A stretch of DNA of 62,926 nt, filler included, from Reticulomyxa filosa (Eukaryota; Protista; Foraminifera): the NCBI GenBank assembly GCA_000512085.1. It is 17 parts of 17 records of this genome, joined end to end, with 100 filler letters (N's around TTAATTAATTAA, not from the genome) between each part and the next. Parts side by side here need not be neighbours in the genome. Positions count along the whole stretch, not along the records: positions 35,586 to 41,496 come from ASPP01005457.1; 16 more parts are not named here. The stretch is one strand, 5' to 3'. The position numbers and the translations under genes were made by a program. The notes below the pieces were generated by a model. It made no database searches. It was not told where the DNA came from and saw only the letters and a list, made by a program, of their open reading frames with translations. This document shows positions 35,444 to 41,496 of this stretch, piece by piece; the stretch's first letter is position 1, and each line of letters begins with the position of its first letter.

Positions 35444-35631
35444 GTTTGTGTGAATGCAAGTTGCTTTAAATTTTTTTTTTTTTTTNNNNNNNNNNNNNNN
35501 NNNNNNNNNNNNNNNNNNNNNNNNNNNNNTTAATTAATTAANNNNNNNNNNNNNNNNNNNNNNNNNNNNNNNNNNNNNNNNNNNNAAAAAAAAAAAAAAA
35601 AAAAAAAAAAGGAGGAAAAAAAAAAAAAATA

Positions 35632-36775
35632 AACTTGAGTCCCAGCAAAAAAACAACCTCCTGCCAATCGAAGGACTAGATCGACAATACAACCAGTTCG
35701 GATTTTGCAATCGACAATGGTAAGATTGTCCCTTAATTGCAGTCCAGCAAATACAAGTCTCTGCTGTTCCGGAGGGATGCCTTCTTTGTCTTGGATCAAT
35801 GCTTTGGTTTCGGCAATGGTAGTGTGTGGAAAGACAGAGATGGAAAATCTGTTCCAGTCAATGTTCGAATCCTTAGAATCATTTCATTTTCATTTATGAG
35901 CACCGGCACTTGAACAATCGCAATGACATTCTGTTGTTTTCTTTCATTGTCATCTCGCCCTCGACCTTCTTTTCGTCCGAGCTAGTATCCATCTTGCGAT
36001 AGTCTGTCAATCTTTGTCCCAAAGAACGCAGCTTTTGTCCCATGTTTGTTGAAAAACAATTTTTGATTGCCATGTCGAATGAGCTGTGCTGATGTGCCCT
36101 TGCTTGTGCTTACAATGGTCAGCACCGACGGGGAGCATCGAGACGCCTGATAATTGTAAAGTGATACATTGAAAGGGGCTTCCACATTATCCCCATCTGG
36201 TATTGGCAACATACAACACTGGGCCGACATGATCACATGCGTATCCTCCTTTTCGTTACATAAATTCATTCGTATTATCTTACCGGCTCCATCTTTCAAT
36301 GGATAGGACATGTACTCATGCACGTTTTTCAAGTATTCACTCAGTGTTATTGTCTTAAACGTCGCTTTTTTTTTGTCACTATCCGGCTCTGCCAATTGCT
36401 CATTTCCTATCACCAATGGGATCTTTTCCATTCTTACGTCCCAAGTCTTGTCGCTGAAATTTGAGTAACGAATCACCGGCATTCTGGTCTTATCCACTTG
36501 CAATGTCATGTCTGATATGTTTGGTCCCCCAACACGACTTCTTGTTTCTTGCTGTATCTTCCCATGATACATTCACAATATCCAGGCCGGCTTTCGTCGC
36601 ACATTTCTTTGCTTGTGATGAACCTATTGGAATAAAACATTACGTATACGTATGTGGTACGTGCAACACAGAAAACTGTTTGTGTTCCTACTTTTGTTAT
36701 TTACTCACTTGAGGCCATTTCTTTTACAAGGCTAATAACATCTTGTTGAGATTTATCTTTAGGAACTTGAGTCAT
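35632..36775 (-). CDS. Uncharacterised N-terminal domain + divergent ubiquitin (ends LRLAGG) + start of a Hint/intein-like domain (CFFAGTQ); 3' truncated
   Basis: ATG at 36775, intron 36708-36624, three 1-nt homopolymer shifts (about 36528, 36020, 35853). Ubl spans 35882-35656: MILRIRTLTG..TKALIQDKEGIPPEQQRLVFAGLQL..DLVLRLAGG. It is followed directly by C-F-F-A-G-T-Q, then a probable GT donor and the contig end. Confidence 0.85.
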
Positions 36776-37314
36776 TTCAGCACTTCGAAGGAAATTTTTT
36801 AAAAAATGAAACCAATAAAACAAGTCTTTTTTAACTGTCTGGGACAACCGACTTTTTTTTGCGTGTACACTGAACAATCGTATTAACTACTTCAACTAAT
36901 TGACATCGTTAAGTCACTATCTTCAATTATAACAAATAGCAAAAATGAAATGAAAATAAAATATAATGGTATTGAGACAATTAAATTAATAATTCAACGT
37001 GGCGAATTAAAAAATGCTTTTAAATAAAATACTGATTTTCGTTTCCAATAAAAAATTATGGGTGAACTTGTAGGTTTGCATCAAAGTAATGTCCAATTTT
37101 AATTTACTAGTTAATTTTTGGAGTGAAAATTAATTAGCATATGACTTGGCTTAATACATCGACAACAAGTAATTTGAGTATCATTGTTTGTGAATGACGT
37201 TACATTCTTCAATTGTTTAGTAAAAAAGCGCTTTTTGAAGCCGTTGAAATAAATTGCCGACAAAAGTCCAAAACAAAACAAAAACAAGAAGCGTAATCTA
37301 TTTTCATTCTCAAT

Positions 37315-38301
37315 TTTACGTGTTTTGGTGCAAAGTCTTCAAATGTCGTCTCAAATTGCATTTGTTTGCGAATTTCGAATCACAAAGCTCACAAAAGAAT
37401 ATTTTTCTGGCATGAGTGTCGACTACATGAGTTTTATAATGCATTATTAAGCTCTCTTTTCTATCAAATAAAATAAAAGGAAATTGTTTTTTTTTTTTTG
37501 AATTGATCGATCTATTTCATCTTATCTCACAGATATATCCAATAATAAAAAAGATATACCTGGCAAATTTCTTGGAGCAGCAAACACAAACAAATTGCTT
37601 GACACCAAAATGGCAAGTGTCAATATGCTTACGTAATGCACTGGAATCAACAAACAAGCCATGACAAATTTCGCACTCTTTTTTAAATGATAATGCAATT
37701 CGTTCTGAGACAGTGACGGAGGAAAGTTTTAAGTGGATTGGGTAGTGGTTCATCATGTCCGATCGACTGCCAAATTTTCGTTCGCACCCCGGATACAAAC
37801 ACGAAAACTCTTTTTTGTGCACCCTTTGCTGATGACGTGTGACCGAACCACGAACACGAAAGGTTTTGTCACAAAGATTACAACTGTACTTGCCTTTTGC
37901 GCTATTGCGCTTTTTCAAGTAGTGTGAGCACTCATTCAACTTATGGCACCAGCGTTCTTCTTTTGATAAAAATAATAAGAGACAATGTCGGCATTTTTTT
38001 ACTGTAGTTTTTTTTTTTTTGAGTGCGAAAAATCGTTAGGTTAAACAGAACTACTTTTTTTTTATCTTAACAATCAAACAAACAGGAACCTTGGTGCGAT
38101 TCAATACCACATGCGCTTTTATGAATGATAACGTGACATGCGGGGCATTTAAGTGAAGAATTATATTTGAAACTTGAAGGCTCATCTAAAACACCTCCTT
38201 CTAAAGCAGGGGCTAGGAGGAGAGACGACTGCGCTGAGACATGTCTCTGTTTTCTTCACGCTTGCTGTTATGTCTTTCTGACTCAGAGAGGTTTTTGGCA
38301 T
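37315..38301 (-). CDS. C2H2 zinc-finger protein (multi-exon)
   Basis: Repeated CxxC..F.....L..H...H units (CNLCDKTF..HQQRVH, CLYPGC..HYPIH, CEICHGLF..HIDTCH, CVCCSKKF, CELCDSKF..HLKTLH). The start position is approximate. Confidence 0.88.
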
Positions 38302-38685
38302 CTTTATTATATACTTGATATTTCGAAAAAGAATGAACGAAAAACGGTATTAAATTATTGTTTTTTTAGTTTGTGTTTTTTTGCGTGAGCTGGCGCCCAA
38401 GCTAGTACAAATACATAAATAGACTCGTGGGGTATTAGAAGACAGTAATCGAGAGCCAAATACATTCAAATAAACAAAAACAAACAGTGTGTTCGGTTCA
38501 ACGCTGTTCTTTTCAACTTGATTTTTCAAATCTTTACCGTATGAAACATCAAGTTAACAATTAAATCTGCTTCTCTGACTTCCTAGGATTAGAATTAATT
38601 AGTTTTTTCGGCTCAGATTTTCAAAAAACATTTAGTGCAAGGAAAACCTTTGTAAGTAAACTTGAGCACCTGTTGCGGTATATTC

Positions 38686-38975
38686 ATGCGGAACATACTT
38701 TTCATTTCGATATTGTTGTATTATCTAATTGTAAATATTGATGGAAGCTTTGAGGCAACTCGAAGGCGTTATGAAGCCAGACAAGCGAATGCATTCGAAC
38801 CAACCCGTCCTTCAACGTTAGAATTACTCCCACCTTTGTACAATGGAAGCATGCAATGTTTTACGCAAGACGAAATTGAGACCATTGTGACCAATTTTAA
38901 TCTTTCTCGCCGAATTTCGCAAGTGGGAAGAAAACTCGCAGTGATAAATGTATTGGGCCGATAACTCCCTCATTT
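38686..38975 (+). CDS. Putative secreted protein, first exon (signal peptide), truncated
   Basis: MRNILFISILLYYLIVNIDG hydrophobic leader, then a hydrophilic region that runs into an intron-like AT/poly-T tract. Confidence 0.45.
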
Positions 38976-39091
38976 GTGTTCATTTCGTTTAATATATGCG
39001 TATATATAATTTTTTTTATTATTTTTTTTTTTTTTTTTTTTAAAAAAGGGGGGGGGGAGCGTATGTATTTAAAAAAAAGAAAACGCAACAG

Positions 39092-40318
39092 GTGGCCCCA
39101 TGTAATGGAGTGACTTGACATCCTTGGGATCTCCATTGGACCCGGTGAAGTCGATAGCGACGATGAGGTTGACTTCCATTCCGCCGGTGATATATTCCAA
39201 GAATGAGTACTTTTTCTTAAGATTTTGGCTTTCGATGATGAGCACGCCGTACTTGTGATCGGGCTTCAGGTCGCCTTTTTTATCGCGACGAAACAAAGGC
39301 AACTCTTTGGACTCCAGCAAGGCCGCCAACGTGGTCTCAGCTTCGCCAATAATGGCCGGTTCCGCTTTTTTATTCCAATCCAAACAGCGGATTAAAATGG
39401 GACGCTTCATGTCGCCATTGTTGAGTCTTCGCACAGGGATGTACATTTCTTGCCAGCGAGGCGTATACGTATTCTTAATTACTTCCGACTTATGCACTGA
39501 CATCCATCCACCGTCCTCGGCCTTGCGATACCACTGCAGAAAAGGGTCCGCCTTGCCGAACCAATCCATCTTTGGCAAGTCCTTGGCGCTTAACTTGATT
39601 CGATATTCGTCGTTATTGTTCTTGATCTCCTCGCATCGGATTATTATCGGCACCTGCTGGCTCTTATGCGTTACCACCTTCCCATCTCGTCCCTTCAGCT
39701 TTATCGCCAACTTTTGTCCCTTTGCTGTCATCAGGTCGCCCATCACAAACTCGGCCAATCCTATAAAGTCGTGCTTCGACAAGTCGTTCAAGTGCTTCTT
39801 GTCGTCGCAGTCGTATACTTCCATTCGAAAGATTTGCACTTCTTCGAACATATAATCCAACTTTATCTATTTTTATTAGTTTATACGTACATATATACAT
39901 ATACATATATATATTTATATATTTATATATATATATATACTTATGTATATACACCATATATGTAAATCTAGTTTTTTTTTTTTTTTTAACCTCTTTTGTA
40001 AAGTCCGGATTTGGATTGTCGTCTTGCACTTCTGTCATCCCTATTCTTTCGTAACGGTTGTGCTTTTCATCTTTTCGATAGATCACTACAAACGGGTCGC
40101 TTGGACTTCCTACGTCCATGCTTGGCAGATTGCTTTTTATCATTTGTTTTGTTTTTTAAAAAAAAAAAATTTTTTTTTTTTTTCTTTTGATTTCGCACTT
40201 CCTTTTTTTTTTTTTAAAAAAAAATCAGTATAATCCCGCACCGGCATGAAATGAACACTTCTAGTTGCGTTGACAATGTCACAACTTGAGCTTGCTGTTC
40301 AGGGGGCAGATATGACAT
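39092..40318 (-). CDS. Copine (two C2 domains + start of vWA domain), 3' part missing
   Basis: LEVFISC|.NLPSMDVGSPSDPFVV, TEV.DDNPNPDF, YMFEEVQ..R.EVYD, DLPKMDWFGKADPF, YSFLEYITGG.EVNLIVAIDFTGSNGDP...SLHY. Confidence 0.95.
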
Positions 40319-40674
40319 GCTACCTAATGTATTTTTTTTTCTAGATAATAATGACTAAAGAAAAATTAGAGAGGACCCTGGTCGCGTTTTTGCTACAAAA
40401 ACACTTTCTTTCATCTTTGGCCTTTCTCTTTCTTACTTGATTTGCTCGTCATGCTGATAGTAAAATCCATTCTACTTGCTTGTAAATATAAAAAATAATC
40501 GAAATAGTCCTACTTTTTTTTGTGAATCAGAGAGAAGAAGCTGGCGATTTTAAACTATGTTTCTCCTCCCCCCCCCTGTCTAAAAAAATTCCAATTCCTA
40601 TCATTTGTGTTTTTGAATATAGTATTGGAAAAGAGCATAACGGACAAAACTAGAAAGAAACTCAAAGGTGCTAA

Positions 40675-41496
40675 ATGTTCGACAAAGCGTCAATACGAAA
40701 TGGCAGATGTCAAGTGTACGACAAAGCAATGAAGCTATGTGGAGGAATGGATCAAGAGCCTGTGACCAAAAAGGAAGAAGAAGAAAAAAAAGAAGAGTAC
40801 AAGACTAATGATGGAAAAAGGGAGAGTATGATTGACAAGTATGAAAAAGAATTGAAGATATTGTTATTGTTATGTGGAGATATAATGAGGAGAGAGGAAT
40901 TAGTGGAGGAATTGGAAAGCAGTAATGGGAACGTGCAAAGCATAATTGAAAAGATGGTATCGAGATTGATGGAAAGCGATGACTATGTGCAGATTGAAAT
41001 GCAGCGTGAATCAAAGATAAAAATGCAATTGCAAGCAGAAATGCAAATCCAAATGGAATTGGAGATGGAATTGAGAAGAAAGACAGAAATGGGAATGGGA
41101 ATGGGAATAGAAATGGAAATGGAAAAACAAAAGCAAAAGCAAAGAGAATTAGAAATGATAATGCCTAAGAGATTGAAAAGTACAAAAAGCAAGCCGAACA
41201 ATGATCGAGCGGGTTTGTATAAGGAGGAGGAAAAGACACAGATTGGAGAATTGAAGTCTGGGATTAATTTGCAAGGACTGTGTCGAAATGAGGATTGTTT
41301 GGCAGCAAAGGCACGATTACCAGTGTGGATCAACTTGGGTTTTGATACGATTGTATTGAATAGAATGAGGGGAATGCATTTGTATGTCCCGATTGTAAAG
41401 AGCCGATGATAGAAGCGATTACAAAAGTGTTATTTTATAACTCGGAGCATTGGATCAGAGAGAGGCCAATGACAATGACAATGACAACGACAACGA
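40675..41496 (+). CDS. Hypothetical protein with helical N-terminal segment, Met/Glu repeat and Cys-cluster domain
   Basis: GINLQGLCRNEDCLAAKARLPVWINLGF and, after a frameshift near 41365, FVCPDCKEP..VLFYNSEHWI: putative 4-Cys metal site. Confidence 0.7.

Follow-up and report, generated by a model that had tools for sequence, protein, structure and literature searches.

A ubiquitin-like domain followed by a probable Hint domain start in a gene of the foraminifer Reticulomyxa filosa

In a gene of the foraminifer Reticulomyxa filosa, the terminal Gly-Gly of a ubiquitin-like domain (Ubl) is followed directly and in frame by the residues CFFAGTQ, which raises the question of whether the Ubl is fused here to a Hint domain. 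To our knowledge, Ubl-Hint (BUBL) fusions represent the only known route of Ubl conjugation that proceeds without ATP and E1/E2/E3, and we know of such fusions being described and tested so far only in ciliates. The gene is encoded on the minus strand of positions 35586-41496 of the window, i.e., the whole stretch of 62,926 nucleotides that was analysed; these positions comprise the entire 5911-bp contig ASPP01005457.1 (assembly GCA_000512085.1). The close paralogs of the window gene carry the NCBI organism name Reticulomyxa filosa (foraminifer). The sequence comparisons described below suggest that the gene is a probable new Ubl/intein-like fusion of the sort first described in ciliates, and that the window is likely to contain two-thirds of the gene from its 5′ end, the multidomain product of which would consist, in this order, of a cargo domain, a Ubl and a BIL-type Hint.

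The gene layout was obtained from nucleotide alignments with two paralogs, RFI_14112 (locus L003) and RFI_04247 (locus L001). Searches were run with separate pieces of the window gene or, instead of a joined translation, with the intact database proteins of the paralogs. Exon 1 (36709..36775, minus strand) starts with the ATG at 36775 and ends with ...KEMAS and a split Ser codon, as aligned with both L003 and L001. Intron 1 (36624..36708, minus strand), which runs from GTGAGTAAAT to CCAATAG, is a GT-AG intron at the same position as the 110-nt GT-AG intron of RFI_14112, whose borders were placed exactly using the database protein of L003. The NCBI model of RFI_04247 additionally removes a 48-nt in-frame “intron” (L001:905-952) that encodes the conserved ...PSVLTIVSTSK and is probably mis-called. 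The long exon 2 of the window gene extends on the minus strand from 36623 down to at least 35635. Its cargo part (35883..36623), which reads WEDTAR...WGPNISDMTLQV...IQVPVL, corresponds to the N-terminal domain of an unnamed family, and it is followed by the 76 codons of the Ubl (35656..35882), which end in LRLAGG. The two Gly codons (35661-35656) are followed in frame by the Cys codon TGT (35655-35653), the first residue of the CFFAGTQ tail (35655-35635), a candidate Hint block A that would begin at Cys1. The next triplet, GTT (35634-35632), is either a Val codon or an intron donor, and the remaining positions (35631-35586), consisting of TAT, T14, CCTCC and a T run that reaches the contig edge, are the probable beginning of an intron.

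Other features are present on the same contig. A copine-like gene (39069-40143, minus strand) has two exons with C2 domains (Pfam C2, E 1e-14) and an intron that starts with GTTAAAAAAA... and contains an AT microsatellite; its second exon ends with IVAIDFTGSNG, which we take to be the start of a copine/vWA-type domain, and the ORF then enters C and A homopolymers. Fragments of a C2H2 zinc-finger gene (Pfam zf-C2H2, E 3e-8), annotated by NCBI as a 308-aa product, are located at 37316-37939 (minus strand). On the plus strand, a 244-aa ORF (40675-41409) contains E/K/M repeats, has no Pfam match and may not be a gene.

The preliminary description of this DNA had reported a complete Ubl. The domain is real and lies at 35882-35656 of the minus strand; nevertheless, it is not whole in one frame, as its residues 1-13 are shifted because of a 1-nt deletion at about 35845. 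The frame-1 piece matches the Pfam ubiquitin profile PF00240 (profile positions 8-71) with an E of 9.7e-19 and 67.3 bits (cutoff 25.4), and the Ubl shares 57% identity with a near-canonical ubiquitin repeat over 63 ungapped residues. In this alignment, LRLAGG is placed on LRLRGG, so that the C-terminal Gly-Gly at positions 75-76 is present, and K27 and K33 are kept. Following the established residue numbering of canonical ubiquitin, the substitutions K6R, K11T, K29L, K48L, K63T and R74A noted earlier are correct. From the lost lysines and R74A, it had been proposed that the domain was uncoupled from the canonical ubiquitin pathway. This proposal is weakened, because RFI_14112, a paralog with the same junction, has neither R74A nor most of the lysine losses: it keeps LRLRGG together with K6, K11, K27, K29 and K33. 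The window copy is, moreover, frameshifted. The Ubls of the two copies are about half identical, with a dN of 0.37.

The in-frame CFFAGTQ after Gly-Gly was borne out, on the minus strand, exactly where it had been read. RFI_14112, an old paralog on a separate contig and intact over all of its visible sequence, has a protein C-terminus reading ...LRLRGGCFFAGTQ and retains the same GGCFFAGTQV. The DNA that encodes this stretch is GGG GGA TGC TTT TTT GCG GGA ACT CAA GTT in RFI_14112 and GGA GGT TGT TTT TTT GCT GGG ACT CAA GTT in the window, so that the ten codons differ by 5 synonymous and 0 non-synonymous changes. The probability that all 5 differences fall by chance on the approximately 7 synonymous sites among the 30 is about 1.5e-4 (hypergeometric). 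The synonymous sites of the two paralogs are saturated (dS about 1.3), and no other stretch of the C-terminal region is as well conserved in this comparison as the tail. Since only synonymous differences are found across the ten codons, the CFFAGTQ tail is coding and under purifying selection.

From the Gly-Gly to the contig edge, no stop codon occurs in any frame, either in the window copy or in RFI_14112. Both copies continue with CAAGTTT and then with poly-T, where their contigs terminate; the model annotated by NCBI for RFI_14112, marked as partial, stops exactly at the Gln. The probable intron that had been proposed after the tail is therefore plausible. In the window, CAA/GT is the only GT available, with no further GT downstream, and the gene probably has here a phase-0 intron beginning with GTTT and an extended stretch of T, inside which the assembly broke. 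The triplet read as Val at the end of the motif may thus represent the donor and not a codon. The alternative of a donor at the Gly-Gly codons (GGAG/GTTG) was considered and excluded, as RFI_14112 has GGGGGATGC at this place, without a GT.

A Pfam search with the 99-aa tail piece returned only ubiquitin families, the seven putative Hint residues being too short for any threshold. Since these residues are too few for HMM scoring, the junction was sought in other proteins, using the last 45 residues of RFI_14112 as the query. This search recovered seven Ubl-Hint proteins among 10 candidates, all seven with the junction LRLRGG-CF[VL]xG[TS]x[IV]. The residues that follow LRLRGG in these proteins are CFVNGTKI, CFVAGTKV, CFVHGTRV, CFLKGTMI (twice), CFVAGSIV and CFVAGTNI. 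Every protein of this search with GGCF after a Ubl has a Hint, complete in six cases and truncated, in the same way as in R. filosa, in one. The Pfam models Vint, Hom_end_hint and Hint_2 begin at the junction Cys of the seven proteins, which are also matched by the Intein_splicing, PT-HINT and Hint models.

All six complete relatives have Cys1, a T-x-x-H-P block B and a C-terminal [HK]N, and their residue +1 after the terminal Asn is Ala, Gly or Gln. As this residue is not Cys, Ser or Thr, the complete relatives are expected to be unable to splice canonically and to perform cleavage or aminolysis, which, judging from these motifs, would make them BIL-like proteins rather than splicing-competent inteins. 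Three of the seven proteins match the solved Tetrahymena BUBL BIL2; the Hint of P0299 aligns with Tetrahymena thermophila BUBL1 BIL2 (PDB 6Y75 and 6TMM) from the Gly-Gly on, with an E of 6e-19. Two of the seven, P0303 and P0304, are transcripts of the foraminifer Bolivina argentea (EukProt EP01084), and P0303 can be aligned with the R. filosa paralog without gaps and with 52% identity from the first Ubl residue through GGCF.xGT.

In P0305 and P0306 (JGI, Logan contigs), the Ubl-Hint is followed by a weak match to the PARP catalytic domain (E 2.6e-5, below the Pfam cutoff), which recalls the ADP-ribosyltransferase name given to the Tetrahymena BUBL1 protein in PDB. In P0299, P0300 and P0302, the Hint is followed by a second Ubl that ends in GG and then by a conserved unnamed domain (GGRMKQKIY...INIANG..W..IT...YPWF.YDD).

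Based on these comparisons, which support it well although indirectly, we regard it as likely that CFFAGTQ is the start of a Hint whose body lies beyond the contig edge. In both the window gene and RFI_14112, a nucleophile Cys is residue 1 directly after the Gly-Gly, and CFFAGTQ(V), whose Val codon may be an intron donor, agrees with the block A consensus C-F-hydrophobic-x-G-T/S-x-V/I. The Hint start claimed earlier thus holds as a coding tail with a GG-CF.xG[TS] junction like that of the seven Ubl-Hint proteins, while the Hint body that the claim implied is off the contig. Searches did not recover the downstream exons. A profile of the C-terminal domain of the cargo family (A1), a domain that would be encoded past the contig edge, gave 36 matches in the protein collection, none of them from R. 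filosa, including among proteins of 83-262 aa; the NCBI candidate P0284 belongs to another assembly. The back-translated GGCFFAGTQ gave 4 matches in JGI metagenome contigs, all in stop-filled frames, which is the number expected by chance.

Other readings of the tail have to be weighed against this one. That CFF... results from the translation of a T-rich 3′ UTR or intron is most improbable: TGT TTT TTT is indeed T-rich and runs into poly-T, but GCT GGG ACT CAA is not, the differences from the paralog over ten codons are exclusively synonymous, and the lack of a GT at the Gly-Gly codons of RFI_14112 means that there is no donor ahead of the motif. It is less far-fetched, although still unlikely, that CFFAGTQ is a short conserved tail or linker, e.g., a propeptide that a deubiquitinase cleaves off or a linker that leads past the intron to the C-terminal domain of the cargo family. 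Just seven residues are visible, and three members of the cargo family, P0023, P0034 and P0061, carry a Ubl in the same position but continue from it into a linker and the C-domain and lack a Hint, which counts against the Hint reading. Nevertheless, linkers are not conserved across the cargo family, whereas the CFFAGTQ tail is strongly conserved; neither paralog has a stop in any frame after the tail; and in the junction search GGCF after a Ubl was always accompanied by a Hint, six times complete and once truncated. A third reading, in which the Ubl is followed by a Hint-derived, non-catalytic, AXH-like binding module without thioester chemistry, has very little probability in our view. It draws on the post-GG domain of the Bolivina protein (P0303:298-440), which scores 35.9 bits with the Pfam AXH model (cutoff 33) and agrees with the HBP1 AXH structure at CFLKGT and HPFYVKNKG; a Cys placed directly after the Gly-Gly, and the retention of Cys1, TxxH and the terminal Asn in six of six complete relatives, argue against it. 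The AXH match of P0303:298-440 suggests that the animal AXH module is itself a Hint derivative.

A different question is whether the window copy is functional. It carries four 1-nt frameshifts (+1, +1, -1 and -1) within about 700 nt, while L003 and L001 are both intact at the four sites in the nucleotide alignment. On the minus strand, these are one extra G in a G run compared with both paralogs (36534-36523), one extra base beside a T run (36032-36014), one base missing after an A run (35944-35931) and one base missing beside a T run at residue 13 of the Ubl (35852-35839). Once the frameshifts were placed by paralog alignment, an upstream TAG that is in frame in the unrepaired reading proved to be out of frame, and a ciliate-type genetic code was accordingly discarded. 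It is possible, if rather doubtful, that the window copy is a recently inactivated pseudogene, with the junction as a relic and Hint chemistry only in intact paralogs such as RFI_14112. In addition to the four frameshifts against two intact paralogs, this possibility is favored by the NCBI annotation, which includes only a 196-aa ORF between two of the frameshifts, and by the copine-like neighbour, which has a clean ORF of 263 aa (790 nt) without frameshifts. On the other hand, all four indels are in or beside homopolymer runs, as fits assembly or sequencing error, and the assembly GCA_000512085.1 was presumably built from pyrosequencing reads. The repaired reading of the window copy is without a stop, and the changes unique to its branch (31 synonymous and 14 non-synonymous) have a ratio similar to those on the branch of the sister paralog (19 and 9), so there is no sign of a long period of relaxed constraint. 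The overall dN/dS of the window copy against L003 is 0.14, and that of the cargo part against the paralog is 0.10. Judging from these substitutions, the window copy was under purifying selection until recently; it may be damaged, with the frameshifts as very recent decay, or the frameshifts may be assembly errors. The pseudogene reading is in any case compatible with the Ubl-Hint explanation for the gene family.

The N-domain of a large unnamed family, with the motifs WED.AR, GP.ISDMT and QVPL, is encoded by the approximately 740 nt that precede the Ubl. The 196-aa ORF piece has 547 relatives at E<=0.001 and 355 at E<=1e-10, the best outside R. filosa having an E of 1e-44. Its members are found across numerous eukaryotes, and bacteria such as Kofleriaceae, Planctomycetota and cyanobacteria have them as well. 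A typical member consists of the N-domain, a variable linker and a conserved C-domain with ERD.RFP.RVT.Q.YK...GSLV...RPTE; some members carry extra CUE, ZZ, SAM or FH2 domains, and in P0023, P0034 and P0061 the Ubl lies in the linker and ends in RGG. Neither Pfam nor NCBIfam has a match for the family, and a sequence-profile comparison with the PDB gave no relative. The typical member P0153 nevertheless yielded a confident AlphaFold2 model, with a pLDDT of 87.8 and a pTM of 0.80. Foldseek found no PDB structure for this model at E<=0.001, and the best VIA-align hit (Z 4.8) covers a helical tail only. In the ESM Atlas, the nearest shapes are uncharacterised, mostly viral proteins with a TM of up to 0.63, which align across residues 64-360; a feature search of the Atlas for the family gave no usable match. 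As the aligned region covers the N-domain as well as the initial strands of the C-domain, it suggests the linker to be a loop inside a single fold. No gene was shared between the two bacterial neighbourhoods of the family that were compared. In this family, which includes P0153, P0014 and the bacterial members P0184 and P0220, the fusions to CUE, ZZ, SAM, FH2 and Ubl domains point to a possible connection with ubiquitin signalling.

With respect to mechanism, the preliminary description had proposed an E1-independent conjugation module. For such a Hint, Tetrahymena BUBL BIL2, this activity is already published, so that the novelty was overstated. According to PMC8616854, which cites Chiarini 2021 and Dassa 2004, Cys1 of BIL2 becomes joined by a thioester to the final Gly of the Ubl ahead of it, and BIL2 passes the Ubl to a lysine through an isopeptide bond without ATP or E1/E2/E3. 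In R. filosa, no more than seven residues of the putative Hint, corresponding to block A, would precede the T-rich intron where the assembly broke, and it is by analogy with BUBL that we infer the rest of the Hint, its activity and the route by which the thioester would be resolved. Cys1 would attack the carbonyl of Gly76 (N-S acyl shift) to give a cargo-Ubl-Gly76 thioester. Hydrolysis of this thioester would represent self-maturation, leaving a free GG end without a deubiquitinase, while attack by a lysine amine would result in an ATP- and E1-independent isopeptide conjugation. The N-Ubl-C relatives would arrive at the same free GG end via a deubiquitinase, in a parallel to polyubiquitin versus BUBL.

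A more speculative proposal, to which we give only slender credence, takes the organization of the cargo family into account. A Ubl-Hint cassette may have been inserted in the inter-domain loop of a conserved two-part protein, the N and C parts of which are predicted to form a single compact fold. In this arrangement, the Hint would work as a switch, which either frees the whole N-domain-Ubl as a thioester that attaches itself to target lysines without E1/E2/E3 or cuts the fold in two. If this were the case, the self-conjugated unit would be a complete functional domain and more than a ubiquitin tag, and an uncharacterised and widespread family would be tied to ubiquitin-like signalling.

The Ubl-Hint reading, which we prefer, extends the BUBL-type junction, under purifying selection, to Foraminifera, with two R. 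filosa paralogs and two Bolivina transcripts; a third R. filosa paralog is cut off within the Ubl. The R. filosa junction follows a large cargo domain whose family, unstudied and unnamed, occurs in eukaryotes and bacteria and is recurrently associated with ubiquitin modules. With an active Hint, an entire domain would attach itself to targets.

Several known systems share parts of this arrangement. Canonical inteins and bacterial BIL domains have a block A with Cys1, and the Ubl-Hint relatives match a BIL (2LWY) and mini-inteins by sequence; the Ala, Gly or Gln at +1 of the complete relatives nevertheless argues against canonical splicing in the group. Hedgehog/Hog proteins have a comparable Gly-Cys-Phe junction. 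In Hedgehog, the N-S acyl shift of the Hint places a thioester on the last cargo residue, which is passed to a nucleophile; the cargo is the Hedge domain, and cholesterol, which a sterol-recognition region recruits, serves as the nucleophile. Unlike Hedgehog, nothing in the R. filosa sequence points to a sterol region or a Hedge cargo. The N-Ubl-C members P0023, P0034 and P0061 have the same cargo N-domain and a Ubl at the same place that ends in RGG, but in these proteins the GG leads into a linker and the C-domain, with no Hint, and a deubiquitinase would be required to liberate the GG end.

The ciliate BUBL (BIL-ubiquitin-like) proteins, which were reportedly described by Dassa, Yanai and Pietrokovski in 2004, and Tetrahymena BIL2, a domain activated by Zn, have, as in R. 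filosa, a Ubl whose Gly-Gly is followed by the Cys-Phe of a BIL-type Hint, with the junction CF.x(G/N)T.(I/V). They differ in that the R. filosa host is a foraminifer (Rhizaria), that its module follows a large non-Ubl cargo domain rather than a poly-Ubl array, and that, of the putative Hint, the R. filosa sequence contains block A, with no Hint body, block B, C-terminal Asn or +1 residue. The Bolivina proteins P0303 and P0304 differ from R. filosa in their upstream region, which consists of further Ubl-like domains in a BUBL-like array rather than the R. filosa cargo family; they likewise come from a foraminifer, they have the same LRLRGG-CF.xGT junction, and this junction opens a complete Hint with TLEHPF and VLVHN-G.
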